Positions 1,747 to 53,171 of a stretch of DNA of 64,000 bases are shown piece by piece (the stretch's first letter is position 1; every line of letters starts with the position of its first letter). This DNA is from Hyaloraphidium curvatum SAG 235-1 (lineage: Eukaryota > Fungi > Monoblepharomycota), in contig JAIVFI010000010.1 in the NCBI GenBank assembly GCA_025558095.1, positions 310,001 to 374,000 on the forward strand. The letters are read 5' to 3'. The translations under genes were made by a program, and so were the position numbers. The notes beneath the pieces were generated by a model, which did no database searches, had not been told where the DNA came from, and saw only the letters and a list, made by a program, of their open reading frames with translations.

Positions 1747-2407
1747 ATGCGGCCGGCCCTCCGCTGCCTGTCTCGGGCGGCACCGCGATTGGCCGCCCCT
1801 CTGCGCGCACCCCCCGTGCCCCGCGCCCTCCCCGCCGTCCTCCCGCGGCCACCTCCCGCCGCCCTTGCGCGACCCGCTCCCCCCGCGAGTTTGGCCCCGC
1901 CCTTCCGCGGCCTCGCCTCCGCTGCCGCCGCCGCCCTCCCCGCCGACGACGACGACCGCCCCTTCTCGCCGCACCCCCCTCCCACCCCCGCCGCACACGC
2001 CGGCAAGCTGCTCCTCACCGACCGCGCCGCGCGCCGCATCGAGCTGCTCAACGAGAAGGACGGGCGGCCGGACCAGGCGCTGCGCGTGGTGGTCGAGCCG
2101 GGCGGCTGCCACGGCTTCCAGTACCGCCTGGAGCTGGACGGGCGGTACTACGAGGACGATGTGTGGGGACCGCACCCGCCCCTCGCTCCCTGCCGATCTC
2201 ACCTCCTGATCCTCCCCCTCCAGGGTGTTTGGAAACGACCGCCACCCCGGCGGCCGCGCTGTCATCGACGAGACCTCGCTGGACCTCGTAAAGGGCTCCA
2301 AGCTGGACTGGGTCGACGAGCTCATCGGGAGCAAGTTCGCCCTGAAGGACAACCCGAACGCCGACTCGGGATGCGGGTGCGGGACGTCGTTTAACGTCAA
2401 GATTTGA
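1747..2407 (+). CDS. ISA2: Mitochondrial A-type Fe-S cluster assembly protein (IscA/HesB family, Isa2-like)
   Basis: Arg/Ala-rich presequence; LRVVVEPGGCHGFQY and NPNADSGCGCGTSF motifs; intron 2163-2223 (GTGGGG...CAG) joins the two frames. Confidence 0.92.
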
Positions 2408-2469: not shown

Positions 2470-2494
2470 GGGATGATCTGATACACGGAACTGC
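2470..2494 (+). repeat. Left copy of imperfect direct repeat flanking the McrBC-like module
   Basis: GGGATGATCTGAtaCACGGAaCTGC, versus GGGATGATCTGA--CACGGAgCTGC at 6554-6576. Confidence 0.75.
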
Positions 2495-2537: not shown

Positions 2538-5131
2538 CTAGTCCTCGCCGGCTCCTACCCACGCGCTCCCTCCCCAGAAGGCCTCCATCGTGTACGAGTC
2601 CAGCACGGTCTTCATCCGCTTTCCGTGGAAGTACTCCTTGAGTTGGGGCCGGATCACCTCCTTCCACTTGCGCGCAAGCTGCGGCGGACCGAACTGCTCG
2701 TACTTGGCCGCGCCTTCCGGAGCTTTGCCCTTGGGATCGCGCTTTGGCGGCGGGAGAAACAGGGCATGGCCGAAGCACTGGTCCTCGGAGAGGTCCTTCT
2801 CCACCTTCTCGTTGAGCTTCTCGAAGCCGCGCACGAGGGCATCGAGGTCTGCACCGCCAAGAAGCTCGGGATGGGCGTCATAGAACCTTCTGAGGAGCCC
2901 AGGATCGGGACCCAGTTCGATTACGCTGAATCGGCGCCGGAGCGCGGCGTCCAGAGGTTGGATGCTTCGATCTGCAGTGTTCATGGTCGCGATTATGGCC
3001 AGATCCGGCGGGATGGAGAAGGCAGCCGAATGCTGGAGCTGGATCTCGTCTCCGCGATACTCGATCAGATGGAGCAGCTCGCCAAAGACCCTGGGCACGT
3101 TGCAGCGGTTCAGCTCATCGATGATGAGGATGCCCCCGGGTCGATCTGCCGTGCCCTTGCCCCGAGCACGTTCCGCGGCCTCGACCAGCTTCCCAGGACG
3201 CTTTTCGAAAGCCAGCTTGCCATCGACCACTTCTGGAACCATTCCTTCTACGAACTGGTCGTATGTGTAGGATGGGTGGAATTGAACCGATGTCACGCGC
3301 TGCTTGCATTCTAGTGGATTTCCTATGAGGGCCTCTGCAAGAGCCTTTGCCAGCAGTGTCTTGCTTGTTCCGGGAGGGCCAGCTAGAATGAGATTCGGAA
3401 GTGGCGACAGGAGTACCTCTAAGGAGCTCTTTAGTATCGCATCAGATGTTTTGGTAGTGCCCTTAAGCTTAGCAACCAGTGCATCAATGACTTCCCCCCG
3501 TGTAGGTCGGGAAGGTGCAATCTGTTGCGTGTCCGATGATTCACTATGTTGATTTGGAGCCAATCCCAAAGGATGCTGCTCTACTGCAGGCCGGAACATT
3601 AGATCCAGAGTGAATGGCTTCAGAATCCTCAATTGTTGAGTAGACAAGAATGGAACAAGGTACCTGGTGAATGCATCCTCAGTGATTGAATTGCCCTCCA
3701 GATCCAGTACCTCCAGGTTGCGCTTCCCATGCAGTTTGGAGCAAAGGACTGTGCAATGGGTATCTCCAAGGCTGCAATTCGCAAACCATAGCTCCACTAC
3801 TGCTGCCAACTTTGACAGGGCATCCATGAGCATCGAGAAAACAAGCTTTGTGCCTGTGCTCTGATCTACCACAGAGTAGCTTAAGTCAGTTCCACTGAGG
3901 TCCAGCACTCGCAGCTTAGTAGAGCTCCTCAAGCTAGTCGCAAGGTGACTAATGCTGTAACTGACTCGAAAGTTGGTGAGGCGGAGGAGACTCAGATTAG
4001 CAAAGAAAGTGCTTTGCCCCACAATGCTCAGCCTAGTCAATGAATCATCTGTCATTTCGTTCCCTCCTATGTCCAAACTCTCGAGCTGACGTTGTGGCTG
4101 AAGTGCACTTGCCAAAGCTAGTGCCTCTCGATCACACATACCATATCGCAGGGCCAAGGTCACAATTGGCTTTCCATTCAAAAGCCTGGTAATGGTCATG
4201 TGGCAGTCATGATGATCCACTTCCCCTTTCAGGAAAACATGCTTCAGGCATGCCTGGTGTTCCACACCAACTGCAATCCTTGAAACTGCTGCTGAAATGG
4301 AGGTCCCAGCAGGGCAGTCTATGTGCAGCCTCTTCAAATCCGGCATAGAGGTCAGTAACGCATAATCAAGGCCGTCTCCTGACGCAAGCAGTAGCTCAAG
4401 ATGTGATGCTGAGGTCAATTTGAGTCCCACATTACGCAGAAGCACACCACGTAAGGAAGAAGGTCCGGCCAGGATGGTCTCAATGGAATGCGTGTCTGAT
4501 GCTCTGAATATGCAGATGCGCTTGATGGCAGTTTTGGGGTGTATGCCACTCAGCATGTGCTGAACGTCAGAAGGCCATGAGCCTCCCCAAATGTACAGGT
4601 CCAACAAATCAGGCCTTGAACCCATCAGTGCTGCTGCCACTGACCCTGACTGCAGCTCATCACCGTCAAAGGCAGCGTCTGCAAGAGTCCAAGTATCCTC
4701 AATCGTGAGGCCGGTCTGTTCCAATGTCACGTTCCCAATTGCATGGAGAAGACTGCGGCATCCTGCAACAAGATGGTTCATAGGCACGTTGCGCATGTTT
4801 CCCATAATGTTGACACCTTCGACTCGGCCACTATTGACCGAGAAAAAAAGTTCGGTGACTGCCGGGAAGTACTCCATTCCAACGTCCCCTGCTTTCAAGC
4901 GCAAAACGCCATTGGACACCTTGTCCTGGACCCATCTAGAGGCGCAATGTTACAACATCATAACTGCGTGAGAGAAAAGAGTGTTGCTAACCTGTCCACA
5001 AGTCCTCGAGTGTCGACGCGAGCGAGTTTAGATGGAGGTCCGTCCCGCAGTTCTTCTTCAGCAGCTCCTGACGAACGCGGTCGCGTGGCCTTAGGTGGAG
5101 GGACTAAAGTAGCGTCACTAGAGCCGCCCAT
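2538..5131 (-). CDS. mcrB: LRR (RNI-like) - McrB-family AAA+ GTPase fusion, about 845 aa, 2 exons (5131-4992, 4935-2538)
   Basis: C-terminal McrB motifs: NLILAGPPGTSKT (Walker A), VQFHPSYTYDQFVEG, ILIIDELNR (Walker B), FGELLHLIEYR, IIATMNTADRSI (NxxD signature), LDAALRRRF, FGHALF. N-terminal LRRs: LESLDIGGNEM, LRVLDLSGTDL, VVELWFANCSLGD, LEVLDLEGNSIT. Intron 4991-4936 (GTTAGC...TCTAG) joins ATG 5131 in frame to the 793-aa ORF. Confidence 0.9.
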
Positions 5132-5269
5132 GTGCAGATGACGTTGATCGCGCGCTATCGAGCGATGTTTTCGTCGTCGGTGTTGGCGCAGCTCGATATC
5201 CGCGCGCCCGCGCACCAGCCGGCGCGCCGTCGATCGCACCGCAGCAAGCGCGCGTCAAGCATCCGAATC
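5132..5269. promoter_or_regulatory. Putative bidirectional promoter between divergent mcrB-like and mcrC-like genes
   Basis: 138-bp CpG-rich spacer between ATG 5131 (-) and ATG 5270 (+); inferred from gene geometry only. Confidence 0.5.
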
Positions 5270-6565
5270 ATGAGTGCCTGCTTCTCGACCCAGGAAACAC
5301 ACCAAGACACCAGTTGCATCGAGGATGGCCGTCCGGTCGTTCTGGATTTGGACGATGCGAGCGGCGAATCCTTGAAGCGCGTCCTCGGACGTGTCTCGCG
5401 AGCCCACAGCTTGAACAGGGACAAGCGTGTTACTTTGAAACACCTCGGCCCAAGGAAATGGGAGCTTGTGGCCAGAAATGTAATCGGAACTTTGTCGTGC
5501 GGTAGTCGGACGATCCTTATTGGGCCAAAGATCCCTCTCGAGCACGTCCTCCATCTGGCTATTGCTGGGGGCACGATGCCCAGCTTCTCTCCGGACTTGT
5601 CGTCAGTTGGACCTTCGAAGCACTTAACGGAGCTCATCATGTGGTGGTTCGTTGACGAAGTGCGGCACCTGCTCGCTTCGCCACTATTCTGCGACTATGT
5701 TGAAGCCGACTTGGTGGGCGAGACGTGGGCGGGCGCGTTGGACATGGCCTACGTTGCGAAACAGTTCTATCAGCGCGGGAAGCTTGAGCCGAAGGTGCTC
5801 GCGGACCAGCTTTCGCCTGACACTCCCGTGAACCGCGTGCTGCTTGCGGCGCTCAATCGGATTGTGAAGCTGTCATCTGTGCGCTATCAGTCCTTGGTTC
5901 GGCAGGCAAAAGACCTTCTTCCGCGGTTCGCGGGCGTCGGAGAAATGTTGCCTCGTGATCGAACAGTGGAGCCCGCGCGGCGGATGGCGAGCTACTCGAC
6001 GGCGTGGACTTTTGCTTGTCACATCCTGGACGGCCTCTCGCGAACCTTAGGAACAGGGGACATGCTGAGCTTTTGCTTCCTTCTTCCCACCGCTCAATTT
6101 GTGGAAAAAGGACTCCGTTCTATCATCCAGGACTGCCTGAAACCGGGGCTGACAGTATCGAAGCCTGCGATCCGGCGACATGACGAAGCGGACATGGCGA
6201 CCGTCACGTTCAATCCAGACCTCGCATTTCGCAAGCGCGGACGAAGCGGCTTTCTTGCCGTCGGCGATGTGAAGTACAAAGTTAAAACGGGCAGCTTATG
6301 GAACCCGCGCACAAATCTGGAGCAGGCTGTGACTTTTGCGGCAGCCGCCAACGTCAACCACGCCGTGATTTGCAAGTTCGCTCCTTCCGCACCTGATAGA
6401 GCGGCCGTGCTTGACCTGAATAAGGTCAAGGTGACGGTCGTCATCTGGCCGACGGACCTCACGCCTGCGGAGGCGGAGGTCCGCTTTGCAAAGCAAGTCG
6501 AGGCCTTCCTCGCTCGTGTGGACGAGGGCGAGCACCTCTTTGGGGCAGGAGATGGGATGATCTGA
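5270..6565 (+). CDS. mcrC: McrC-family PD-(D/E)xK restriction-type endonuclease subunit, about 431 aa (upstream in-frame ATGs at 5138 and 5165)
   Basis: LVARNVIGTL...ILIGPKI (McrC N-terminal I.PK motif); LSPDTPVNRVLLAAL; FVEKGLR; catalytic FNPDL...VGDVKYK; NLEQAVTFA (matches D.YQ..Y position); adjacent to the McrB-like gene. Confidence 0.87.
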   Translation: MSACFSTQETHQDTSCIEDGRPVVLDLDDASGESLKRVLGRVSRAHSLNRDKRVTLKHLGPRKWELVARNVIGTLSCGSRTILIGPKIPLEHVLHLAIAGGTMPSFSPDLSSVGPSKHLTELIMWWFVDEVRHLLASPLFCDYVEADLVGETWAGALDMAYVAKQFYQRGKLEPKVLADQLSPDTPVNRVLLAALNRIVKLSSVRYQSLVRQAKDLLPRFAGVGEMLPRDRTVEPARRMASYSTAWTFACHILDGLSRTLGTGDMLSFCFLLPTAQFVEKGLRSIIQDCLKPGLTVSKPAIRRHDEADMATVTFNPDLAFRKRGRSGFLAVGDVKYKVKTGSLWNPRTNLEQAVTFAAAANVNHAVICKFAPSAPDRAAVLDLNKVKVTVVIWPTDLTPAEAEVRFAKQVEAFLARVDEGEHLFGAGDGMI

Positions 6566-6576
6566 CACGGAGCTGC
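6554..6576 (+). repeat. Right copy of direct repeat flanking the McrBC-like module; contains the mcrC stop codon
   Basis: GGGATGATCTGACACGGAGCTGC: 12 bp identical to 2470-2481, then 10 of 11 identical. Confidence 0.75.
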
Positions 6577-6615: not shown

Positions 6616-9270
6616 TCACCGCTTCGACGGCGCGCCCTTGGAGTCGAAAAAGTCCGGGTTGAACGCCCCCGGCGGCGGCGCGGTGTAGGGCGGCGGCGCC
6701 TGCCCGAGCGGCACGTCCTCGGGGAACGCCCCTGGCGCCGTCGGACTCGCCGGGAACGCGCCCGGCGCGGGCGCGGGGGGCGCGGTCGGGTCCGCGAGGC
6801 CGTAGCCGCCTCTCACCGGGGCGGCGGACGCGGGGAAGGGTGAGGGGACGGAGGCGGCGGGGAAGGCGGTGACGACGGGGTCGGGGAGCTCGGGGATCGA
6901 GTCGGCCGAGAGGCGCATGGAGGCGATGTTGGACGTGAGGGCGCTACATGGAACCGGGGGGCGGGATCAGCTCGGGCGTTGCCTCGTCCTCCCTGCGCGG
7001 CACCGACCGGAGGAGCTCCTGCATGTCGATCTTGCGCGCGAACGCATAGTCCTTGACGTTGTCCAGGAACCGCTGCAGCACGGCCTGGAAGTCGGTGTAG
7101 AACCTCGTCCCCTCGTTCAGGTTCGTCGAGATGTCCTTGAACGCCTTGTACGCGCTGTCCAGGTTCTGCAGCGCGCGTTCGCGGTCCTGCAGCACCGTGT
7201 TGGACTTCTTGGCCCGCACGAAGCGCTCGTTGGTCTGCGAGATGACCTCGAGCATCTGCCGCTGCGCCTCGACGGACATGGCGACCTCGTTGCGGATGTC
7301 GGCGTAGCGGTCCAGCTGCGCTGTGAGCACGGATTCGCTGCGGTAGTCCTCGTTGCGCGAGGCGAGGTCGAGCAGACGGGGGGCTGAACAAAGGGGATCA
7401 CGGCTCAGCGCAAGAAGCAGTGACTCGCGGGCGCGCACCACGTACTGATGTCGTCCTCCCTCGCCATCTTCCTGAACCGCTCCATGATTCCCGCCCGCGC
7501 CGACACGATCTTGTGCAGCTGCGCGATCTGCTGCTTGAGCACCGGCACGTTGGGATCGTGCCTATCGGGCGTCGTCCCCGGCCGCGCGGCGGGCACCGAC
7601 GCCTCGAGCTGGTCCCGCGTCCCGTCGAGCGCCATTATGGCCGGCAAATGGCGGTCCAGCTTGCCGCGCACCAGCGCGTCGCTCCGCCGCGCCTGCTCGA
7701 GCTTGTCCCCGTAGGCGCGCGCCGTCTCGCGCAGGTTGGCCGCCAGCTCCGCCGAGGCGGCGCGCGTCCACCGCGCTCCGTAGTGCTCCCTCACCCGGCC
7801 GTCCGACTCGGCTTCCTCGTCCAGCAACCGCACCGCCTCGGCCAGCATCTCCGCGTCCCTCTTGGCCAGATTGCGCACCGTCGCCCACGCGTCCTCGAGG
7901 CTCTTTGCCCCGCCCTCGGAGCGCACCTCCCCGCTGCGCTCCAGCAGCGCAGGCGGCAGACCAATCGGCTGCTCCAGCGCCTCGATCGCCGCGGGCAGGT
8001 TCATGCTCGCGAGCGCCGCCCACGCCGCGTCCGTGGCCTCGCGCAGCTTCTCCTCCTCGGCGCGGACGAGGTCGTCCCGCCGCTGCGAATAGAAAGACAG
8101 CGCGCGGTGCACCTCGAAGGGTACCAGCCGCTCGAAGAGCGGCGGGCCGTAGCAGTCCCGGCTGGGGGTGCCGTCGGGAAGGGGAGGGGGGAAGGGGGTG
8201 TCGGAGGCCATGTTGGCGCGGGGGATGGCGGAGAGCTGGTCGGGGGCGGGAATGCGCTGCACGTAGATGACGTTGTTGTCCTTCTCGGCGCGCGAGAGGC
8301 GTTCCGTCGTGTGCTCCACTAGGGCCTGCCGCGCAAGCGCGCACGATCAGACAGCGAAAACCCTCCACGACCAGCACTGCCCTACCTTGAGATCGCCGAG
8401 GACGACGGAGCCGGCGTTCTTTTGCAGCTCCTTGTCCTGGGCCTTGGCCGCCGTGGCCAGCGCCAGCTTCAGCCGCGCGATCTCCTCCCCGAACCTGCTC
8501 TCGGCGTTGCACACCAGCCCCTGCCTGTACTGCGCCGCGGCCTCAAAATGCAGCATCTTGACGTGCACGTGCGCCGTGAAGGACGCGGGCATCTTGGCGC
8601 CCGTGGCGGCCCCCAGCGACGCCGCGTACCGCTCCGCAACAGCGGCGGCCAGCTTGGCCACCGTGCCGTCCTTGAGCTTGTCCACGACGGCCTTGGCCCA
8701 GTAGCACTCCTGCGCCTGCGCCAGCATGGCGCCCGCGCACGCCGCCAGCACGCCGTCCGAGATATCCGGGGGCGGCGTGACCTTTGCGCCCGCGGCCAGC
8801 TCCTCCCGCATACGCGAAAACACCGATGCCGCGTGCTGGAAGCACGCCGCGGCCTTCTTGGCGCCCTCTGGCGTCATGCGGTACTCTGCCACGCCGACGG
8901 CCGAGTAGGCCGCTGCGATATTCCACATGACGCATAGCCGGTCGAAGCCGAGGCCGAAACCCTGCGCGGGCCGCTTCTGCGGCGCGTAGGCGGCCGACCA
9001 CGTGAAGCCGGCGCGCAAATTGACCTCGTCGGCGGGGAACTTGAGCGAGATCAGCGTCAGCTGGCCGTAGTAGCGCCACAGCTTGCGCAGGCCGGCCTCG
9101 CTCGCGTCGGCGAACACGAGGTCGTTGCGAAGCAGCTCGAGCGTGCGGAAGTCGTCCGCGTACTGGTCCGGGTCCTCGGCGTACTGCCGCGCGACATAGC
9201 GCCGCAGCTCGGGCACCAGCGTCGCGCTCTTTTCCGTGCGCCGCGACTCGATGGCCAGGAGGCTCGCCAT
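6616..9270 (-). CDS. RIM20: BRO1/ALIX-family protein (PalA/Rim20-like): Bro1 domain, V domain and Pro-rich tail; multi-exon
   Basis: LWRYYGQL, FTWSAAY, MLAQAQECYW, FGEEIARLK, RAEKDNNVIY, LFERLVPF, NLNEGTRFY motifs; introns near 8330-8384, 7386-7444 and 6943-7007; PPPY motif in the tail. Confidence 0.88.
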
Positions 9271-29160: not shown

Positions 29161-31521
29161 AGCAAATCACTTCCATACCATGTATTTTTGATTCCAAGAA
29201 CGAGAGCACCTACTTGCCGGCCCGCCGGCGGGGCGCGCCACGCCACGCGCCCCCGGTATCGTCCCCTCCCACCATCCTCTTTCTCACGGCGCCGGCGAGA
29301 ACGCCTGCCCCAGATACGCCGAATAGTCCGATCCCCCCGAGACCTGCGGCATCCCGCCCGCCAGCCTCTGCGCCACCGCGGGCTTGATCCCCGCCCGCAC
29401 GAGGTCGTCCGCGGTGATGAAGTTGCGCTCGCCCGCGACGGCCTTGAACGCCCCCAGGAGCTGCTCCGGGGTGGTCTGGTCCTCCTCGATCGAGCGTACG
29501 AAACCGATGTAGGGCTTGAACGTGACCTCCTCCGTCCCCTTGGAGGCGTCGTGGAACACCTTCTCGAACTCCTCGTCCTGCGATTTCGTGTCAGCATTCA
29601 ATGTGCGGACCGCCGGCCGCCGCAAACGCACCGAGTAGACGATCCCCATGGCCTGCAGCGCGGCCTTGAACTCGAGCCTGTTGAGCGAGTTGCTGTTGTC
29701 CCTGTCGAGCTGCCTGAAGGCGTTCGAGTACTCCTCCAGCTTCCCGGGCGCGATGTCGGTCCGCGTCCGCGCCACCATCTGGTTCTGGATGAAGGACGCC
29801 TTCTTGCCGGCGCCGATGCCGAGCTGCTCCAGGTCGAAGGCGAGGTCGTCGGGCGAGTAGATTGTGTAGACGTTGTCGGCGATGCTGCCGGCCTCGCGCG
29901 TCTCGTTGTAGAGCGCCTCGACGTTCTACGGGCCGGCGAGGGATGGTCAGTGTCGGCTCGGCCTTGGCAGGACTGGGACCAACCTTTAGCGGCCCGTTCA
30001 GGGAGCCCAGCTTGGCCTGCAGCCCCTTGACGGCCTCGAGCTGCTTCTCCAGGCTCATCTTGGGGTCCAGCGACGCCAGGTCGCGCGACAGCCCCTCGAT
30101 GTCCCGCGCGAGCGCGTTTGCCGCGTCGGCGTACTTCTTCCTCAGCCTGTCCCTGGCCTCGGCGATGTAGGCCGTGATCCCGGACTTGCGCTTGCTCTCG
30201 GCGGCCAGGAGGTCCTGCCAGGAGCTGTCGATGTCGGCGGGGGTGCACCCCGCGGGCGGGGCGTAGGCGGCGAGATTGTAGGTCTTGAGCTTGGTAGCGA
30301 TGTTGCCCAGGAGCGTGTCCAGGTCCCGCTTCTCGACGACCCACGAGCGCTTCTGGCCCAGCTTGTGGTTCGTCTCGAACTCGTTGAGCTGGGCCATGGC
30401 GTCCGAGTAGGAGGAGAAGGACGAGGAGCTCCAGGCCGAGACCTGGTCCGCGATCGCCTTCATCAGCGCTGCAAAGACAAAGCGTGAGTCTCGGTCGATG
30501 AAATGCCCGCACAGCCGACCGCCCACCCCTCGCCCGCTCCTCAAAGTCGTTCTGCATCATCCACGCCTGCTCCATGACCTCGGCAAACTTGCCCACCCGC
30601 CTCTGCGCCGTCTCGAGCTTGTCGCTCCCCGCAAAGGCGTGGAAGTACTGCGCCACGTAGGTCATGACCGAGCGCTCGTCGGGCTTGACGACCTCGGTCA
30701 GGTCCTCGGGGGCAAACAGCTTGGGGATCCCCAGGTCGCGCTCGGCCACCTCCATGGCCAGCGCCGCGTTCTCGGTCTTCTTCTTGGTGTCGAGCGCGTA
30801 GAAATCCAGCAGCTCGGGGCGGTGCCGGTGGATCAGCGCGCACAGGGCCAGGCCGTCGTTCCAGGAGAAGGTGAAGTCCTTGACGTCCACCGTCGGCTTG
30901 TAGGGGGCCGTCTTGCGCTGGCACCACAGCAGCAGGCCCTCCTTGGCCGTCAGGCCCTCCTCGGAGATGTCGGCGATGGAGAAGCGCAGGATGAGAGACC
31001 AGATCAGGCCCAGGATCAGCTTCGAGTTCTGGTCCACGATGTCCTCGGCGCCGACTGCGGCGGGGGGTAAGCGGGACGTGCCGGCCGGCCGGGCGGCGGC
31101 ACCCACTGTTGGTCAGCTGGATGTTCCGGGACTTGATGAACTGGAGGACCTTGTTGCAGTTCTCCACCTTCTGGATCCGCAGCTTGGGGTTCTTGTTGTA
31201 CCGCCCCAGGCTCTCCTCGCCAATGACCTCGAGCAGCTGGATCAGCGGCTCGCCCGTGCTCACATCGGTGGTGATGTTGCCGATGGGAGGGAGCCGTTTG
31301 TCGGTGAGCTTGGAGTTGGCCCAGTTGGTGAAGGTCTTGATCTGGATCTCTTCCCTAAGCAGGGCAGGGAGAGGAGGAGCGACGCGTCGGAGTCTGTCCG
31401 GAGGTGCGCGGCGCGGGAAACCCACCACTTCTTGTCCAGACTGTGGGCCGTATCGACGACTGCAGCTTTTCCGGGGTCAGCCAGACCAATATGCGGCTCA
31501 GGAGCGTGTAAGGATCCCACC

Positions 31522-34386
31522 TAGGGTGCCTGGCAAGCTCAAAAAATACCGTGCCCACGGGCATGCCCATCACCTGATCCGGTGCCCATGGGCACCATAT
31601 GGGCATGCCCATCATGTACTTGTAGAAGAGAGTCTATTAGGAACGTGCACGATGCTGCGCTAAGAGTGCTTCCAAGCTTATCTGTGCCTCCCCCTCCTCA
31701 ACAAAAGCCCGCAGCGGTTGAGCAGCAGCCAATTGGGCTTCCTCAGCAGTGCGCAGTTGATTAATGTCGAGGAAACTCTCCAAGACATAGGGCCCTGTCG
31801 CGGCGCGGAAGACGGAAGTTGTCCCAAATCCCACCTCGAACTCCTCCTCCTCCGCATCAATGCGAGGCCAAAGTGCGTGGAAAACATCTCGGTGCTGCTC
31901 GTTTTCCGGGTCCAGGGCCCGGATAGGAGCTCCCGAGCCCAAGGTCAAGGAATCCAGGACGTCGGCAAGGTTGTCATCGGTTCCGTGGGTTCTCCAGGGC
32001 TTTTCCTCCGCAGATTGCACCCTTGGCTTTAAGGTCTTCATCTCCTGCTTCAATGCGCTCTTGACCAGCCCTATTTCCTTCAACGTTGCGGAATTCATTC
32101 GATTCCGCGAGTCTGTCTTTGCAAGGCCCAAACTGGAAAACACGCGCTCGGTCGCGGCACTGTGCGGCGCAATGCTAAGCACCATGAGCGCAAACTCGCG
32201 CACAAAGACGAGTTCCGTAGTGCCCAAGCCCCAGGTCTCCCAGAACTCCCTTGCCGTCCGAACCTGGCCGTCGATCCCGCTGAACATGTTGCGCCCGAAG
32301 AAATAGTCATCCAGCTGGGCAAGGACCGACAAGCTGGCCTCCTGTCGGAACTTCCAAGCAAGCAGCAGCTTGCCAATCTCCCATTCGAGCCACCGCTTCT
32401 TGTCCCTGCCGTCGACCTGGCACCCAGTCACAGAAAACTTCCGGTGAACAGGGGAAAGGTGGAGAGCAACAAGGTAGATCGCATGATCAAACTCCTTGAC
32501 TCTGGCATTTAACGACAACTTAGCCAGAGCGAATGTTTCCCTGGCACCCTCCACAACGGGACTAACACCACGCCAGGTCCGAGCAACCATCGAATACTCG
32601 ATCAGTACGTCTGCCAGGGTCGCGTCCGAATGCTCAAGGCGGCCTAGGGCATCCACAATCGGCCTCACGATCTGGATCAGCTCGGCATTGTGGGCAAAGT
32701 GATACGGGTCCTTCACCACATCCAGCACCCGATCTGGAACGTCTGTCGGCCGTACACCGGGTTCCAGGCCATCGTGCGCGTGTTGCGGGCTGAGGAGAAG
32801 ACGGAACCACGGCTGATGTGCGTCAATGCCCAAGCAGACCGTAATGAGAGAGTACCAGCGCGAGTCGGTATGCGTCGCGAGGGAGTGTGCAACATCGTGC
32901 TTGCCGGCCCAAATCTGGGCCAAGCGGCGCCACATAGGCGCCTTGTGAATCCAATTGACGAGAGTGAGGTTCTTTTTGATCACGGAGGTGGCCCAGTCGT
33001 GCTTCACAATGTCCTTGACGAGCAGGTTGAGGTTGTGGAGAACACACCGAATGCCGATGATGTGGGGGTGCTCCGTGCTCACCAGCCGACGAAGCTTCTT
33101 CATGACGGAAGGACTGTCCGTGCAGAACGCGTTCACGGGGCCCGGGGCCGCGAGATTGAGGCCAATTGAGCGGCACGACATGTTCACCTTCTCGTGCAAA
33201 AGCTCCGCTTTGTGGCGATCCTGAGTGACATCCCAGAGGTCCAACAAACGCTCCATGCCCGGTGTAACGGCTACCATCGCGTAGATTGAGGCCCCAGACG
33301 AATCTTCCCATCCGTCAAGCTGCAGAGTCCACGACTTTGCGGTCCCACAAAGCACGACCAACTTCTGGGCTTCGTCCCTAGTGATCTGGGTCAGGATACC
33401 ACCAATAGAGTGGCGTGTCAGGGGCCGGTACGCCGGGCTCAGGATCCCCAGAGCTTGCAGCAAATATGGATTCGACGCGAATCGAAACGGGACGTTGCCG
33501 GTCACAAAAGCTTTGGTGATCGCGAAATCCACCGCACTTGCAGTGGCAGCAGACAGAGGGGGATGGAAATGAGCCAGGAGAGTTCCAGCGCCAGATGCGG
33601 AGCCCGCCGCAGAACACGCCGAGGGCGGCGTCGACGACGCGTCAGAAAACGCGTTCCTCTTCCTGCGTTTGCTCTGCGGCGCTGCAGCAGACTTTTTCTT
33701 CTGCTCCTCGTCGTACTGATTGAGGCGCCGAAGGTACGCGACGCGTTCTTCCCCCACGGACTTGCACTTGGAAACGATGTGCTGCTCCAACCGTTCTGGC
33801 CGGCCATCCATTTCCTCCGAGCAGAAAGTGCACTTGGCCGTGACGCGTTTGCCCCTGTTCACCCCGTCCTTCCTTTTGACGAGGAAGCCCGCCCATCGCG
33901 GGTCGAGATCCGGTGCCGGGCGCACCCAATCGCCCCGCTCCACGGAAGGTCGCAAGGAGGCAGAGCCGCGCTCGGATCCGCTCTCCTCCTCGTCGCTGCG
34001 TCCTTCATTGACTGCGCTGATGCTGTCATTGGGCGCGAGTTCGTCCTCCATGTTCAGGACTTCGCAAAGCCGGTGAACTCGCGACGAACCCCCCACCCGC
34101 CGACCGCGACACCCTCGCAGAAAAGGAACGGAGACCGCTCTACGGATGAATGATTTCATTGAATCACTATATCAATTCATCCACGTTTGCTTGGCGTGAG
34201 CGATAGATTCCGCGTCCTGGCCCTGGCTCCTGACCCCTTAGGCCGGCTCCCCTGCCCGCTCGACGGGCTCGCTGTTGGGCACCCGGTGGGCAGCGCATCC
34301 GCAATTGGTGCCCATGGGCATGCCATGGGCATGCCCATGGCATGCCCACTTTGGGCATGCCCAACTTTTTGGTGCCAGGCACCCTA
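31522..34386 (-). mobile_element. Apparently autonomous hAT-superfamily DNA transposon, copy 1 (2865 bp)
   Basis: 14-bp perfect TIR TAGGGTGCCTGGCA; 8-bp TSD ATCCCACC (31514-21 and 34387-94); subterminal GGGCATGCCC / TGCCCATGGGCA palindromes; homologous empty site near 58524-58531. Confidence 0.96.
31637..34051 (-). CDS. hAT transposase (BED finger, DUF659-type DDE core, dimerisation domain); ORF open to 34159
   Basis: CTFC...HIVSKC BED finger; LQLDGW (D), CTDS (D), CVLHNLNL (CxxH), SRWYS, SAATERVFS (E), RNRM; no stops. Confidence 0.93.
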   Translation of the reverse strand: MEDELAPNDSISAVNEGRSDEEESGSERGSASLRPSVERGDWVRPAPDLDPRWAGFLVKRKDGVNRGKRVTAKCTFCSEEMDGRPERLEQHIVSKCKSVGEERVAYLRRLNQYDEEQKKKSAAAPQSKRRKRNAFSDASSTPPSACSAAGSASGAGTLLAHFHPPLSAATASAVDFAITKAFVTGNVPFRFASNPYLLQALGILSPAYRPLTRHSIGGILTQITRDEAQKLVVLCGTAKSWTLQLDGWEDSSGASIYAMVAVTPGMERLLDLWDVTQDRHKAELLHEKVNMSCRSIGLNLAAPGPVNAFCTDSPSVMKKLRRLVSTEHPHIIGIRCVLHNLNLLVKDIVKHDWATSVIKKNLTLVNWIHKAPMWRRLAQIWAGKHDVAHSLATHTDSRWYSLITVCLGIDAHQPWFRLLLSPQHAHDGLEPGVRPTDVPDRVLDVVKDPYHFAHNAELIQIVRPIVDALGRLEHSDATLADVLIEYSMVARTWRGVSPVVEGARETFALAKLSLNARVKEFDHAIYLVALHLSPVHRKFSVTGCQVDGRDKKRWLEWEIGKLLLAWKFRQEASLSVLAQLDDYFFGRNMFSGIDGQVRTAREFWETWGLGTTELVFVREFALMVLSIAPHSAATERVFSSLGLAKTDSRNRMNSATLKEIGLVKSALKQEMKTLKPRVQSAEEKPWRTHGTDDNLADVLDSLTLGSGAPIRALDPENEQHRDVFHALWPRIDAEEEEFEVGFGTTSVFRAATGPYVLESFLDINQLRTAEEAQLAAAQPLRAFVEEGEAQISLEALLAQHRARS

Positions 34387-38411: not shown

Positions 38412-39659
38412 CTAGTAAGTCCTCCTCGGATACATCAGCGACATGTACCGGGCTACAAGGTCCCATAGATCTACCAACATGCTGTTCGTCACGTTGTTTG
38501 CAACTCCCATCCCATCCTGAAGTCCGGGCTGTTGTTCCACAGATTGCACAACTGGATCATTCGCAGGAAGTTCCAGTGCCAAGGCCATTGCAGCAATGAG
38601 GTCACGCGAGCCTGGCAGCCAGAAATCAAGAGCAAAGAGCAGGAACTTGGTCCTGATAAACCTTGCTGCCTGGGCAAGGGCCACGTGGATTTCGGCGAAG
38701 CCAAACTCGACCCAGGCACCAAAGCGGAACTCAACACTGTCCACAAGAGACGCTTGCACATGCTGATCGCGCCGCCAAGCTTCTGCTTGGTTGAACGGCA
38801 GTCTGGGGGTTGTGAAGGCTTTTCGGCCTCTACCGCGAACCACTAGCATGAGCTCTATGCGTTGTGGTGGGATGCCGCAAACCGCATTGTACTTGATGAC
38901 GGCGCGCACACGAACCGTAATCTGAGGCAAGGAAGCAACAAGTGGTTGGAAGAAACCCACCAAAGAGTTGCGTGCCCAATATCTCACCCTGTGAACTATG
39001 TCGTAATTCTCAGCATAGAGCACAAAGCGGCCATCATCCGAGATTGAAAGCTCTGCGGTGTACGTGCTCGTACCATTGACGCCAGGAATGATTGTTCCCA
39101 GCCTATTGAGTATGTCCCCGATGCTGCGGCCGCCCCAGACCACGCCAGTACGGCCCCGCATGTGCACAGTTTGTCGCCCAAACAGTACGAGAGGATCTTC
39201 AATCTCCTCCATCCACTTCTGATCCGCACTTAAGTGCGCGGTCCCTTCAGTCACATCAAAACCGGGAGGCGAAAAAGACGTCGAGGGAGGGGAAGACAGG
39301 TTGGATGTCACTGCAACAGCTTGACTTTCAGGGTCTGGCATATCGGATCGTGGCCTCTTGCGTGGGTAGAAGAGCGCCGTCATAGGGTCCGCGTCCGACG
39401 GCAACACCGAAGCTGCTCCGGCAGTGAACCTGCCCATGTTGGTGCGAGACTGGGAAACAGCTTCCTGACCAGAAATTGGGCGGGGAGAACGCTGCGCATG
39501 AGGCCGCACCGCGCTACCGTTGCCCCTCGTAAGGGCCGGAACCACAACACCGACGCTCGCGGTCGGGGTGAAGTTGAATTGAGCATGGTTCGGGTTGCCG
39601 GTGCCGAAAGCGAAGAGCCCTCCTTGGGCTGCGGCCGAGCGCGCTCTAACAGGGGCCAA
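38412..39659 (-). CDS. Hypothetical protein (415-aa ORF, start uncertain), copy 1
   Basis: Long ORF in lower-GC DNA with a PRKRPR basic patch; no recognised domain. Confidence 0.45.
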   Translation of the reverse strand: MAPVRARSAAAQGGLFAFGTGNPNHAQFNFTPTASVGVVVPALTRGNGSAVRPHAQRSPRPISGQEAVSQSRTNMGRFTAGAASVLPSDADPMTALFYPRKRPRSDMPDPESQAVAVTSNLSSPPSTSFSPPGFDVTEGTAHLSADQKWMEEIEDPLVLFGRQTVHMRGRTGVVWGGRSIGDILNRLGTIIPGVNGTSTYTAELSISDDGRFVLYAENYDIVHRVRYWARNSLVGFFQPLVASLPQITVRVRAVIKYNAVCGIPPQRIELMLVVRGRGRKAFTTPRLPFNQAEAWRRDQHVQASLVDSVEFRFGAWVEFGFAEIHVALAQAARFIRTKFLLFALDFWLPGSRDLIAAMALALELPANDPVVQSVEQQPGLQDGMGVANNVTNSMLVDLWDLVARYMSLMYPRRTY

Positions 39660-45033: not shown

Positions 45034-47898
45034 TAGGGTGCCTGGCAAGCTCAAAAAATACCGTGCCCACGGGCATGCCCATCACCTGATCCGGTGCCCA
45101 TGGGCACCATATGGGCATGCCCATCATGTACTTGTAGAAGAGAGTCTATTAGGAACGTGCACGATGCTGCGCTAAGAGTGCTTCCAAGCTTATCTGTGCC
45201 TCCCCCTCCTCAACAAAAGCCCGCAGCGGTTGAGCAGCAGCCAATTGGGCTTCCTCAGCAGTGCGCAGTTGATTAATGTCGAGGAAACTCTCCAAGACAT
45301 AGGGCCCTGTCGCGGCGCGGAAGACGGAAGTTGTCCCAAATCCCACCTCGAACTCCTCCTCCTCCGCATCAATGCGAGGCCAAAGTGCGTGGAAAACATC
45401 TCGGTGCTGCTCGTTTTCCGGGTCCAGGGCCCGGATAGGAGCTCCCGAGCCCAAGGTCAAGGAATCCAGGACGTCGGCAAGGTTGTCATCGGTTCCGTGG
45501 GTTCTCCAGGGCTTTTCCTCCGCAGATTGCACCCTTGGCTTTAAGGTCTTCATCTCCTGCTTCAATGCGCTCTTGACCAGCCCTATTTCCTTCAACGTTG
45601 CGGAATTCATTCGATTCCGCGAGTCTGTCTTTGCAAGGCCCAAACTGGAAAACACGCGCTCGGTCGCGGCACTGTGCGGCGCAATGCTAAGCACCATGAG
45701 CGCAAACTCGCGCACAAAGACGAGTTCCGTAGTGCCCAAGCCCCAGGTCTCCCAGAACTCCCTTGCCGTCCGAACCTGGCCGTCGATCCCGCTGAACATG
45801 TTGCGCCCGAAGAAATAGTCATCCAGCTGGGCAAGGACCGACAAGCTGGCCTCCTGTCGGAACTTCCAAGCAAGCAGCAGCTTGCCAATCTCCCATTCGA
45901 GCCACCGCTTCTTGTCCCTGCCGTCGACCTGGCACCCAGTCACAGAAAACTTCCGGTGAACAGGGGAAAGGTGGAGAGCAACAAGGTAGATCGCATGATC
46001 AAACTCCTTGACTCTGGCATTTAACGACAACTTAGCCAGAGCGAATGTTTCCCTGGCACCCTCCACAACGGGACTAACACCACGCCAGGTCCGAGCAACC
46101 ATCGAATACTCGATCAGTACGTCTGCCAGGGTCGCGTCCGAATGCTCAAGGCGGCCTAGGGCATCCACAATCGGCCTCACGATCTGGATCAGCTCGGCAT
46201 TGTGGGCAAAGTGATACGGGTCCTTCACCACATCCAGCACCCGATCTGGAACGTCTGTCGGCCGTACACCGGGTTCCAGGCCATCGTGCGCGTGTTGCGG
46301 GCTGAGGAGAAGACGGAACCACGGCTGATGTGCGTCAATGCCCAAGCAGACCGTAATGAGAGAGTACCAGCGCGAGTCGGTATGCGTCGCGAGGGAGTGT
46401 GCAACATCGTGCTTGCCGGCCCAAATCTGGGCCAAGCGGCGCCACATAGGCGCCTTGTGAATCCAATTGACGAGAGTGAGGTTCTTTTTGATCACGGAGG
46501 TGGCCCAGTCGTGCTTCACAATGTCCTTGACGAGCAGGTTGAGGTTGTGGAGAACACACCGAATGCCGATGATGTGGGGGTGCTCCGTGCTCACCAGCCG
46601 ACGAAGCTTCTTCATGACGGAAGGACTGTCCGTGCAGAACGCGTTCACGGGGCCCGGGGCCGCGAGATTGAGGCCAATTGAGCGGCACGACATGTTCACC
46701 TTCTCGTGCAAAAGCTCCGCTTTGTGGCGATCCTGAGTGACATCCCAGAGGTCCAACAAACGCTCCATGCCCGGTGTAACGGCTACCATCGCGTAGATTG
46801 AGGCCCCAGACGAATCTTCCCATCCGTCAAGCTGCAGAGTCCACGACTTTGCGGTCCCACAAAGCACGACCAACTTCTGGGCTTCGTCCCTAGTGATCTG
46901 GGTCAGGATACCACCAATAGAGTGGCGTGTCAGGGGCCGGTACGCCGGGCTCAGGATCCCCAGAGCTTGCAGCAAATATGGATTCGACGCGAATCGAAAC
47001 GGGACGTTGCCGGTCACAAAAGCTTTGGTGATCGCGAAATCCACCGCACTTGCAGTGGCAGCAGACAGAGGGGGATGGAAATGAGCCAGGAGAGTTCCAG
47101 CGCCAGATGCGGAGCCCGCCGCAGAACACGCCGAGGGCGGCGTCGACGACGCGTCAGAAAACGCGTTCCTCTTCCTGCGTTTGCTCTGCGGCGCTGCAGC
47201 AGACTTTTTCTTCTGCTCCTCGTCGTACTGATTGAGGCGCCGAAGGTACGCGACGCGTTCTTCCCCCACGGACTTGCACTTGGAAACGATGTGCTGCTCC
47301 AACCGTTCTGGCCGGCCATCCATTTCCTCCGAGCAGAAAGTGCACTTGGCCGTGACGCGTTTGCCCCTGTTCACCCCGTCCTTCCTTTTGACGAGGAAGC
47401 CCGCCCATCGCGGGTCGAGATCCGGTGCCGGGCGCACCCAATCGCCCCGCTCCACGGAAGGTCGCAAGGAGGCAGAGCCGCGCTCGGATCCGCTCTCCTC
47501 CTCGTCGCTGCGTCCTTCATTGACTGCGCTGATGCTGTCATTGGGCGCGAGTTCGTCCTCCATGTTCAGGACTTCGCAAAGCCGGTGAACTCGCGACGAA
47601 CCCCCCACCCGCCGACCGCGACACCCTCGCAGAAAAGGAACGGAGACCGCTCTACGGATGAATGATTTCATTGAATCACTATATCAATTCATCCACGTTT
47701 GCTTGGCGTGAGCGATAGATTCCGCGTCCTGGCCCTGGCTCCTGACCCCTTAGGCCGGCTCCCCTGCCCGCTCGACGGGCTCGCTGTTGGGCACCCGGTG
47801 GGCAGCGCATCCGCAATTGGTGCCCATGGGCATGCCATGGGCATGCCCATGGCATGCCCACTTTGGGCATGCCCAACTTTTTGGTGCCAGGCACCCTA
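45034..47898 (-). mobile_element. hAT transposon copy 2 (duplicated with the segment)
   Basis: Same TIRs and the same TSD ATCCCACC as copy 1, offset 13,512. Confidence 0.95.
45149..47563 (-). CDS. hAT transposase copy 2
   Basis: Translation identical to copy 1. Confidence 0.93.
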   Translation of the reverse strand: MEDELAPNDSISAVNEGRSDEEESGSERGSASLRPSVERGDWVRPAPDLDPRWAGFLVKRKDGVNRGKRVTAKCTFCSEEMDGRPERLEQHIVSKCKSVGEERVAYLRRLNQYDEEQKKKSAAAPQSKRRKRNAFSDASSTPPSACSAAGSASGAGTLLAHFHPPLSAATASAVDFAITKAFVTGNVPFRFASNPYLLQALGILSPAYRPLTRHSIGGILTQITRDEAQKLVVLCGTAKSWTLQLDGWEDSSGASIYAMVAVTPGMERLLDLWDVTQDRHKAELLHEKVNMSCRSIGLNLAAPGPVNAFCTDSPSVMKKLRRLVSTEHPHIIGIRCVLHNLNLLVKDIVKHDWATSVIKKNLTLVNWIHKAPMWRRLAQIWAGKHDVAHSLATHTDSRWYSLITVCLGIDAHQPWFRLLLSPQHAHDGLEPGVRPTDVPDRVLDVVKDPYHFAHNAELIQIVRPIVDALGRLEHSDATLADVLIEYSMVARTWRGVSPVVEGARETFALAKLSLNARVKEFDHAIYLVALHLSPVHRKFSVTGCQVDGRDKKRWLEWEIGKLLLAWKFRQEASLSVLAQLDDYFFGRNMFSGIDGQVRTAREFWETWGLGTTELVFVREFALMVLSIAPHSAATERVFSSLGLAKTDSRNRMNSATLKEIGLVKSALKQEMKTLKPRVQSAEEKPWRTHGTDDNLADVLDSLTLGSGAPIRALDPENEQHRDVFHALWPRIDAEEEEFEVGFGTTSVFRAATGPYVLESFLDINQLRTAEEAQLAAAQPLRAFVEEGEAQISLEALLAQHRARS

Positions 47899-51923: not shown

Positions 51924-53171
51924 CTAGTAAGTCCTCCTCGGATACATCAGCGACATGTACCGGGCTACAAGGTCCCATAGATCTACCAACATGCTGTTCG
52001 TCACGTTGTTTGCAACTCCCATCCCATCCTGAAGTCCGGGCTGTTGTTCCACAGATTGCACAACTGGATCATTCGCAGGAAGTTCCAGTGCCAAGGCCAT
52101 TGCAGCAATGAGGTCACGCGAGCCTGGCAGCCAGAAATCAAGAGCAAAGAGCAGGAACTTGGTCCTGATAAACCTTGCTGCCTGGGCAAGGGCCACGTGG
52201 ATTTCGGCGAAGCCAAACTCGACCCAGGCACCAAAGCGGAACTCAACACTGTCCACAAGAGACGCTTGCACATGCTGATCGCGCCGCCAAGCTTCTGCTT
52301 GGTTGAACGGCAGTCTGGGGGTTGTGAAGGCTTTTCGGCCTCTACCGCGAACCACTAGCATGAGCTCTATGCGTTGTGGTGGGATGCCGCAAACCGCATT
52401 GTACTTGATGACGGCGCGCACACGAACCGTAATCTGAGGCAAGGAAGCAACAAGTGGTTGGAAGAAACCCACCAAAGAGTTGCGTGCCCAATATCTCACC
52501 CTGTGAACTATGTCGTAATTCTCAGCATAGAGCACAAAGCGGCCATCATCCGAGATTGAAAGCTCTGCGGTGTACGTGCTCGTACCATTGACGCCAGGAA
52601 TGATTGTTCCCAGCCTATTGAGTATGTCCCCGATGCTGCGGCCGCCCCAGACCACGCCAGTACGGCCCCGCATGTGCACAGTTTGTCGCCCAAACAGTAC
52701 GAGAGGATCTTCAATCTCCTCCATCCACTTCTGATCCGCACTTAAGTGCGCGGTCCCTTCAGTCACATCAAAACCGGGAGGCGAAAAAGACGTCGAGGGA
52801 GGGGAAGACAGGTTGGATGTCACTGCAACAGCTTGACTTTCAGGGTCTGGCATATCGGATCGTGGCCTCTTGCGTGGGTAGAAGAGCGCCGTCATAGGGT
52901 CCGCGTCCGACGGCAACACCGAAGCTGCTCCGGCAGTGAACCTGCCCATGTTGGTGCGAGACTGGGAAACAGCTTCCTGACCAGAAATTGGGCGGGGAGA
53001 ACGCTGCGCATGAGGCCGCACCGCGCTACCGTTGCCCCTCGTAAGGGCCGGAACCACAACACCGACGCTCGCGGTCGGGGTGAAGTTGAATTGAGCATGG
53101 TTCGGGTTGCCGGTGCCGAAAGCGAAGAGCCCTCCTTGGGCTGCGGCCGAGCGCGCTCTAACAGGGGCCAA
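51924..53171 (-). CDS. Hypothetical protein, copy 2
   Basis: Copy of 38412-39659. Confidence 0.45.
   Translation of the reverse strand: MAPVRARSAAAQGGLFAFGTGNPNHAQFNFTPTASVGVVVPALTRGNGSAVRPHAQRSPRPISGQEAVSQSRTNMGRFTAGAASVLPSDADPMTALFYPRKRPRSDMPDPESQAVAVTSNLSSPPSTSFSPPGFDVTEGTAHLSADQKWMEEIEDPLVLFGRQTVHMRGRTGVVWGGRSIGDILNRLGTIIPGVNGTSTYTAELSISDDGRFVLYAENYDIVHRVRYWARNSLVGFFQPLVASLPQITVRVRAVIKYNAVCGIPPQRIELMLVVRGRGRKAFTTPRLPFNQAEAWRRDQHVQASLVDSVEFRFGAWVEFGFAEIHVALAQAARFIRTKFLLFALDFWLPGSRDLIAAMALALELPANDPVVQSVEQQPGLQDGMGVANNVTNSMLVDLWDLVARYMSLMYPRRTY

Follow-up and report, generated by a model that had tools for sequence, protein, structure and literature searches.

The 64,000-nucleotide stretch of the Hyaloraphidium curvatum SAG 235-1 genome analysed here (contig JAIVFI010000010.1, positions 310,001 to 374,000; hereafter the window), from a monoblepharid species, carries a compact cassette in which an McrB-type AAA+ motor and an McrC nuclease are encoded head-to-head, and in which more than half of mcrB codes for a leucine-rich repeat (LRR) domain. 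That this paired, horizontally acquired cassette is real is almost certain, and our results establish the family identity of both products, the intact state of their catalytic residues, the co-inheritance of the two genes and the architecture of the unit. A preliminary description of the window had reported two adjacent intact open reading frames (ORFs) with McrB and McrC motifs, oriented head-to-head between the intron-containing genes ISA2 and RIM20, and our analysis agrees on each point: every motif quoted is in place, mcrB lies on the minus and mcrC on the plus strand, and the flanking genes, both of which contain introns, encode Fe-S_biosyn and BRO1 + ALIX domains. Complete multi-gene bacterial defence nucleases are rare as working pairs in eukaryotic nuclei, and no description of a paired McrB-McrC in a eukaryote was found in the literature searched, which largely omits subscription journals. 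The features of the cassette and its flanks are as follows.

2538..4935, minus strand: main exon of LRR-McrB; the NCBI model P0016 spans 2538-4805 (755 aa)
3606..4628, minus strand: LRR solenoid of ribonuclease inhibitor (RI)/NLR type, about residues 60-400 of P0016, with Pfam LRR_6/LRR_1 above cut-off
2571..3500, minus strand: McrB AAA+ domain and lid, with Walker A (3357-3380), Walker B, NxxD loop and sensor II/arginine finger
4936..4991, minus strand: predicted mcrB intron, 56 nt, GT-AG, with the sole frame-keeping acceptor of plausible length; host introns are of similar size
4992..5131, minus strand: predicted mcrB exon 1, 140 nt, ATG at 5131, coding for a disordered basic N-terminus with weak motifs resembling a nuclear localization signal (NLS)
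5132..5269, no strand: divergent intergenic region of 138 bp, presumed shared promoter between the two start codons
5270..6565, plus strand: McrC, 431 aa, with scaffold, finger and PD-(D/E)xK nuclease; Arg237 at 5978-5980, PD at 6215-6220, DxK at 6266-6274
2470..2494, plus strand: left direct repeat, resembling a target-site duplication (TSD), 22 matches in a 25-column alignment with the right copy
6554..6576, plus strand: right direct repeat, encoding the final three mcrC codons and the stop
3300..4700, no strand: CpG-depleted, TpG-enriched patch over the LRR and linker, CpG observed/expected ratio 0.17-0.5
1747..2407, plus strand: ISA2-like host gene for an Fe-S cluster protein (Fe-S_biosyn), flank outside the cassette
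6616..9270, minus strand: RIM20/PalA-like host gene (BRO1 + ALIX), flank outside the cassette

As plain ORFs, mcrB runs over 2538-4919 (minus) and mcrC over 5132-6565 (plus), the ATG at 5270 being the likely start of the latter. The spliced mcrB model is a prediction whose frame was verified arithmetically, and the searches and the fold described below used the main exon (P0016). The NCBI gene calls lack the intact mcrC ORF (5270-6565), and surveys based on proteomes would therefore overlook the pair.

Profile and structure searches, which the preliminary description had called for, ranked McrB and McrC first. The mcrB product matched AAA_5 in Pfam (E 1.8e-22) and McrB in NCBIfam (E 8e-28), and the mcrC product matched McrBC (E 7.7e-19) and McrC (E 8e-6) in the same two collections. 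In P0016 numbering, VQFHPSY stands at 507-513, the Walker B DE at 563-564, MNTADRS at 608-614 and LRRRF at 622-626; counted from the ATG at 5270, PD of McrC stands at 316-317 and DVKYK at 333-337. Against solved structures, the AAA+ domain matched McrB of E. coli and Thermococcus gammatolerans at E 1e-27 to 1e-29, with the next family at 1e-5. Foldseek placed McrC 6ut7_G first for the McrC model (E 1e-16, TM 0.62) and McrB 6hz4_A first for the McrB model (E 2e-16), MoxR/NorQ being about 8 orders weaker; predicted local distance difference test scores in these AlphaFold models were 87.5 for McrC, mostly >90 for the AAA+ part of McrB and 50-85 for its LRR part. An identity of McrB with MoxR, midasin or dynein, the alternative raised beforehand, is thus ruled out by both sequence and fold ranks. 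The signature loop is NxxD and lacks the NxD variant typical of CoCoNuT systems, which also carry accessory genes for RNA targeting, unlike this two-gene unit, and PADLOC returned only generic restriction endonuclease matches.

The catalytic residues are likewise intact. The basic McrC residue that stimulates hydrolysis is Lys157 in E. coli and Arg263 in T. gammatolerans (PMC7680126), and in the McrC profile alignment both sit five residues ahead of a conserved aromatic. By sequence alignment McrC of the window has Arg237 at this position; the same arginine is found in 6/6 eukaryotic McrC copies, and its column is invariant in alignment A1. A glycine-to-serine variant of Walker A was considered as a sign of decay and discarded, since it is frequent in bacterial McrB (39/127 motifs among the McrB matches).

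Related copies of the pair were found on other contigs. The top McrC match (P0001) and an LRR-bearing McrB match (P0028) were on the Logan contigs L003 and L002, each of which carries the same head-to-head pair, with 164 bp between mcrB and mcrC in L003 and 126 bp in L002. The cassette has different neighbours at each of the three loci: a P450 gene in L003, and genes for ankyrin-RING, F-box, TPR and adaptin mu proteins and an intron-split mitochondrial EF-Tu in L002. Judged by this gene content both contigs are eukaryotic, a fungal host being shown for the window only. A profile search over 1.84 billion representatives added three further McrC members. In L072 mcrC is intact and a divergent acidic ORF starts 80 bp upstream; in L073 a premature stop immediately precedes the nuclease motif, and the same sample contains L076, which encodes an LRR-tail McrB with degenerate motifs; L106 (5364-6199), which comes from the sequencing run that also gave the intact L003 cassette, has a truncated and frameshifted mcrC relic without mcrB, surrounded by eukaryotic genes and placed on a different sub-branch. 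The proposed search for the same pair in other eukaryotes therefore yielded complete cassettes on two more contigs and partial or broken ones in three further places. These copies bear on whether the cassette is an assembly chimera or a bacterial contaminant, as its GC content of 0.50-0.60 against about 0.70 in the flanks might suggest. Such an artefact is hardly credible, because the cassette stands in an 819-kb fungal contig with a host-derived repeat at both ends, its McrB is fused in frame to LRRs of eukaryotic type, and the same architecture recurs in independent assemblies in an orientation that is absent from the bacterial sister operon.

Phylogenetic analysis placed the two genes congruently, which together with the shared sister operon and the recurrence of the architecture in other eukaryotes upholds the horizontal acquisition proposed in the preliminary description. 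The six eukaryotic McrC sequences form a clade (99/97) whose sister is a freshwater bacterial group (100/99; mixture model, with LG+G4 in agreement), and the four eukaryotic McrB sequences also group together (91/93, not starred), their sister being that same bacterial group (95/91 to 100/100), all trees being unrooted. At the sister loci (L004, L005 and L007) SRA-McrB, McrB and McrC form an operon beside metK, ahcY or trpS, and their products share 57% identity with the window in the AAA+ domain and 34% in McrC. Although sister to both cassette genes, this operon differs in its co-directional, overlapping genes, its two mcrB copies, its base readers and its lack of LRRs. Many bacterial homologues surround the eukaryotic branch in these trees, so that one transfer of both genes from a bacterium to a eukaryote is their simplest reading. 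No isolate or metagenome-assembled genome of the sister clade was found in the GTDB scan or among plasmids, and a viral carrier was considered and rejected, no clade member being present in IMG/VR, PHROGs or BFVD. A co-directional order holds at all bacterial loci with both genes but one, L027 (4098-7062), from another clade, in which mcrB and mcrC lie on opposite strands with overlapping, apparently truncated 5' ends, likely through an inversion or misassembly. We also observed that L004 (2997-9340) and L007 (1818-7059) each combine one mcrC with two mcrB genes whose AAA+ domains are near-identical and whose N-termini differ, one being SRA/EVE-like and the other unannotated. In P0030 (931 aa), a separate protein of very long branch, a SAP domain is flanked on either side by an McrB AAA+ domain, each with a serine Walker A.

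The N-terminal half of McrB sets the cassette apart from restriction systems. The N-terminal 400 residues are LRRs of RI/NLR type, and residues 1-420 of P0016 match LRR families only, with no domain that binds modified bases; the LRR part matches ribonuclease inhibitor and NLRP repeats, and its model shows repeating strand-helix units at moderate confidence. LRRs are present in 4/4 eukaryotic McrB proteins with a visible N-terminus, those of P0167 and P0033 being recognized by eye, without a Pfam match. RI-type LRRs bind proteins. With such repeats in the place of the reader, neither the type IV restriction label nor the activity against modified DNA suggested in the preliminary description is supported. 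The LRRs of the three hosts gave no significant alignment with one another (E 0.09-0.2), whereas identity between hosts is 43-50% in the AAA+ domain and 33-41% in McrC, as one would expect if a variable sensor were attached to a conserved effector.

Comparison with canonical McrBC of E. coli K-12 and T. gammatolerans, the top sequence and fold match, leads to the same view. Shared features include the McrB AAA+ domain with its NxxD loop and sensor II/arginine finger, and the McrC scaffold, finger, PD-(D/E)xK nuclease and stimulating basic residue. As a motor-nuclease the cassette falls within the McrBC family, yet it lacks two traits that define canonical type IV systems: it has an LRR where they have a base-reading domain, and it is divergent in the window, L002 and L003 where they form a tandem operon. 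It further differs in its eukaryotic nuclear locus, its predicted intron and a leucine at the aromatic stacking position. A motor without a fused DNA reader is shared with the non-canonical three-gene McrBC systems of the LlaI/BsuMI kind, whose motors show that the GTP specificity typical of McrB can be lost (bioRxiv 2026.08.31.748284), but these have a separate DNA-binding R1 gene, while no third ORF lies between the repeats at the three cassette loci. A complex that cuts invading DNA after recognizing its modified bases would account for the retention of all motor and nuclease residues, and the sister operon does have SRA-type (and weak EVE) readers. Classical restriction of this kind is nevertheless improbable for an McrB that has a protein-binding solenoid and neither a base-reading domain nor an R1-like partner, and a methyl-cytosine cutter would be self-toxic in a host whose CpG footprint, described below, is suggestive of methylation.

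The ends of the cassette suggest that it has been mobile. In the window it is bounded by a 25-bp imperfect direct repeat whose score was reached by 0/1000 shuffles and 0/3939 host control pairs, and removal of the cassette with one repeat copy leaves a 126-bp gap between the converging ISA2 and RIM20 genes, close to a nearby convergent gap of 117 bp. In L003 a 10-bp repeat is flush with the mcrB stop, and its second copy begins 12 nt short of the mcrC end (5/2000 shuffles, 2/1500 controls); the 12-bp repeat of L002 encloses the pair less closely (17/1000 and 9/1500, with window sizes picked post hoc). Direct repeats of about 25, 10 and 12 bp therefore flank 3/3 complete cassettes, beyond chance. 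Since the repeats are locus-specific and near-perfect while the proteins are only 33-50% identical, the insertions should be much younger than the family, and the cassette has probably moved repeatedly. Neither convincing terminal inverted repeats or tandem repeats nor a transposase, recombinase or other mobility ORF was found in it, unlike in DNA transposons and integrative elements, and the predicted mcrB intron speaks against an RNA intermediate. Restriction genes of bacteria, including type IV, are known to insert with target duplications that are long and variable and without any other mobile element (PMC2853133). Those insertions likewise place nuclease genes between variable direct repeats with no mobility gene, but they are prokaryotic, have repeats mostly >30 bp and come with a proven empty site, compared to 10-25 bp here.

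The same observations are what a selfish addiction or killer cassette would leave. In that case activated McrC would be a poison and the LRR a self-inhibitor or a means of kin recognition, cells or spores without the cassette would die, and breaks made by the nuclease would provide insertion sites. A minimal two-gene unit between direct repeats at unrelated loci, patchy distribution, decayed relics and the bacterial precedent just cited all speak for it, and it fits the mobility as well as a role in defence does, without excluding that role. We consider it unlikely, though far from negligible, as each locus has one copy with no amplification in 71 kb, and as the requirement of McrC for McrB leaves no obvious split into a stable toxin and an unstable antidote (bioRxiv 2026.08.31.748284).

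The LRR region also carries an unusual base composition. Over 3300-4700 only, CpG falls to an observed/expected ratio of 0.17-0.5, TpG rises to as much as 1.7, and no other patch of this kind in the 64 kb is as strong; the same pattern covers the LRR of L003 and is weak at L002. CpG loss with TpG excess is the mark of deamination of methylated CpG. General methylation of repeats was rejected as a cause, for the hAT gene and others in a tandem duplication close by show hardly any depletion (0.87-1.16). Two readings fit: methylation of the LRR body in situ, which would make it mutate fast, or import of the LRRs from methylated host families. CpGs whose loss would unavoidably change an amino acid (codon position 1) were kept more often than those that can be lost silently (p 0.018 in the window and 0.037 in L003, although amino-acid composition may confound the comparison), which suggests selection on the protein. 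That retention argues against a silenced, decaying passenger without current function, as do the two frames, which are open for 2.4 kb and 1.3 kb and keep all catalytic residues; the strong CpG loss over the mcrB body, suggestive of past methylation, and the broken relatives (L073, L106 and the degenerate motifs of P0033) give decay some appeal, but we regard it as very improbable. Milder CpG dips with TpG excess were also seen at 38412-39659 (copy at 51924-53171) and 31500-32000 of the window, within that tandem duplication, one of them over an unannotated 415-aa ORF.

Domestication for a housekeeping role, such as DNA repair, DNA elimination or chromatin remodelling, has precedents in exapted McrB domains, namely staphylococcal PcdA (PMC10602043) and the animal Navigators/UNC-53, whose McrB domain has been attributed to transfer from bacteria (PMC9877351). 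Reading frames that remain intact in three hosts despite deep divergence would agree with such a role. Navigators share with the cassette an McrB-family AAA+ domain in eukaryotes, but have a CH/coiled-coil cytoskeletal architecture and no McrC partner, and the lack of conserved synteny, the fresh-looking repeats, the relics and the hypervariable LRR are atypical of housekeeping genes. We find little probability in this explanation.

In the scheme that we propose, a bacterial mcrB-mcrC pair would have entered a lineage of aquatic eukaryotes once and been rebuilt as a compact head-to-head cassette, with McrB losing its reader of modified bases and gaining a disordered, NLS-like N-terminus and an LRR solenoid. 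From the known mechanics of McrBC we infer that the two genes would be co-expressed from the shared promoter, that LRR-McrB would form a nucleotide-driven hexamer, and that the McrC finger would insert into it, Arg237 stimulating hydrolysis while McrC cuts DNA. McrC acts only together with the ring of McrB, whose N-terminal domain determines the target (bioRxiv 2026.08.31.748284). With a protein-binding solenoid in the place of the base reader, the trigger should therefore be a protein ligand where it had been a DNA mark, or the complex should stay off until a ligand binds. The LRR would then be a gate or targeting module for the nuclease, a role to which we give an even chance; it could bind a foreign or damage-associated protein, for instance from a giant DNA virus or a parasite, and once bound would license the motor-nuclease, so that bound DNA is destroyed or the infected cell killed, as with a sensor NLR and a nuclease effector. 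Spread and loss of the cassette would recur, each insertion falling in an intergenic gap, duplicating 10-25 bp of target and using no transposase encoded by the cassette.

NLR (nucleotide-binding, LRR-containing) receptors and their head-to-head pairs likewise join RI-type LRRs with an oligomerising P-loop NTPase, variable repeats and divergent pairing with an effector gene, but the cassette differs in having an McrB AAA+ instead of a STAND domain, the LRR at the N-terminus and a separate DNase as effector. The conserved effector and hypervariable repeat, the tight pairing of the genes, their gain and loss, and the NLS-like N-termini, which are similar in the homologues and there carry clearer basic motifs, fit a nuclear module for defence or cell death, and an LRR-gated nuclear nuclease with such a function is the reading that we favour, at even odds. 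Several observations weigh against this reading. Divergent gaps of 103-130 bp are usual in the compact H. curvatum genome, so that the head-to-head layout counts only via its conservation, and the basic motifs of the window are weak and lie inside a predicted exon. The residue after the P-loop is leucine in the window, histidine in L002 and the bacterial sister, and phenylalanine in L003 and L076, so that nucleotide handling by McrB of the window, with leucine for the aromatic, may differ. The flanking repeats are TSD-like only, and one copy of the L002 repeat is 283 bp from the mcrC stop. Zoosporic fungi do host giant DNA viruses, but the work that reports them does not mention Monoblepharidomycota, nor does it report a virus for the order of H. 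curvatum (PMC13533422). The broadest form of the proposal, a class of mobile eukaryotic immune cassettes in which a hypervariable LRR or ankyrin sensor on McrB gates a head-to-head McrC, insertion occurs with target duplication and CpG methylation drives sensor diversification, is offered tentatively and remains more doubtful than probable. If active, the cassette would represent a restriction machine rewired into an NLR-like sensor-effector and a candidate antiviral defence for those zoosporic fungi in which giant DNA viruses occur, would allow tests in eukaryotes of whether nuclease genes move without a transposase, and, as a protein-gated motor-nuclease, would be of interest to tool builders.

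An ankyrin-bearing pair extends the range of sensors. P0065, on a 6.5-kb contig (ENA ERZ23498428) whose eukaryotic origin is inferred from the protein alone, combines ankyrin repeats with a pair of McrB domains and has a basic motif at the C-terminus, and its gene is head-to-head, at a distance of 76 bp, with one for a 517-aa McrC. Its relative P0103 (L105:50-2443) has the same tandem AAA+ domains, with a WD40-like ORF just downstream. The AAA+ domains of P0065 fall outside the LRR clade, and a common origin of ankyrin-McrB and LRR-McrB was rejected, although only at the borderline, when the grouping was forced (approximately unbiased test, p 0.048). The ankyrin-McrB/McrC pair may thus have a second, separate origin.

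Other parts of the window were also of note. Upstream of ISA2, at 1-1330, lies a forkhead-like minus-strand gene with an acidic N-terminal exon, of which NCBI calls the first piece only. The tandem duplication mentioned above covers 28905-58496, with a period of 13,512 bp and about 2.2 copies that are 99.5% identical; its unit contains a hAT transposase ORF (31637-34159 and 45149-47671, minus strand) together with F-box, acyltransferase and CH-domain genes, and it is either a recent segmental duplication or an assembly artefact.

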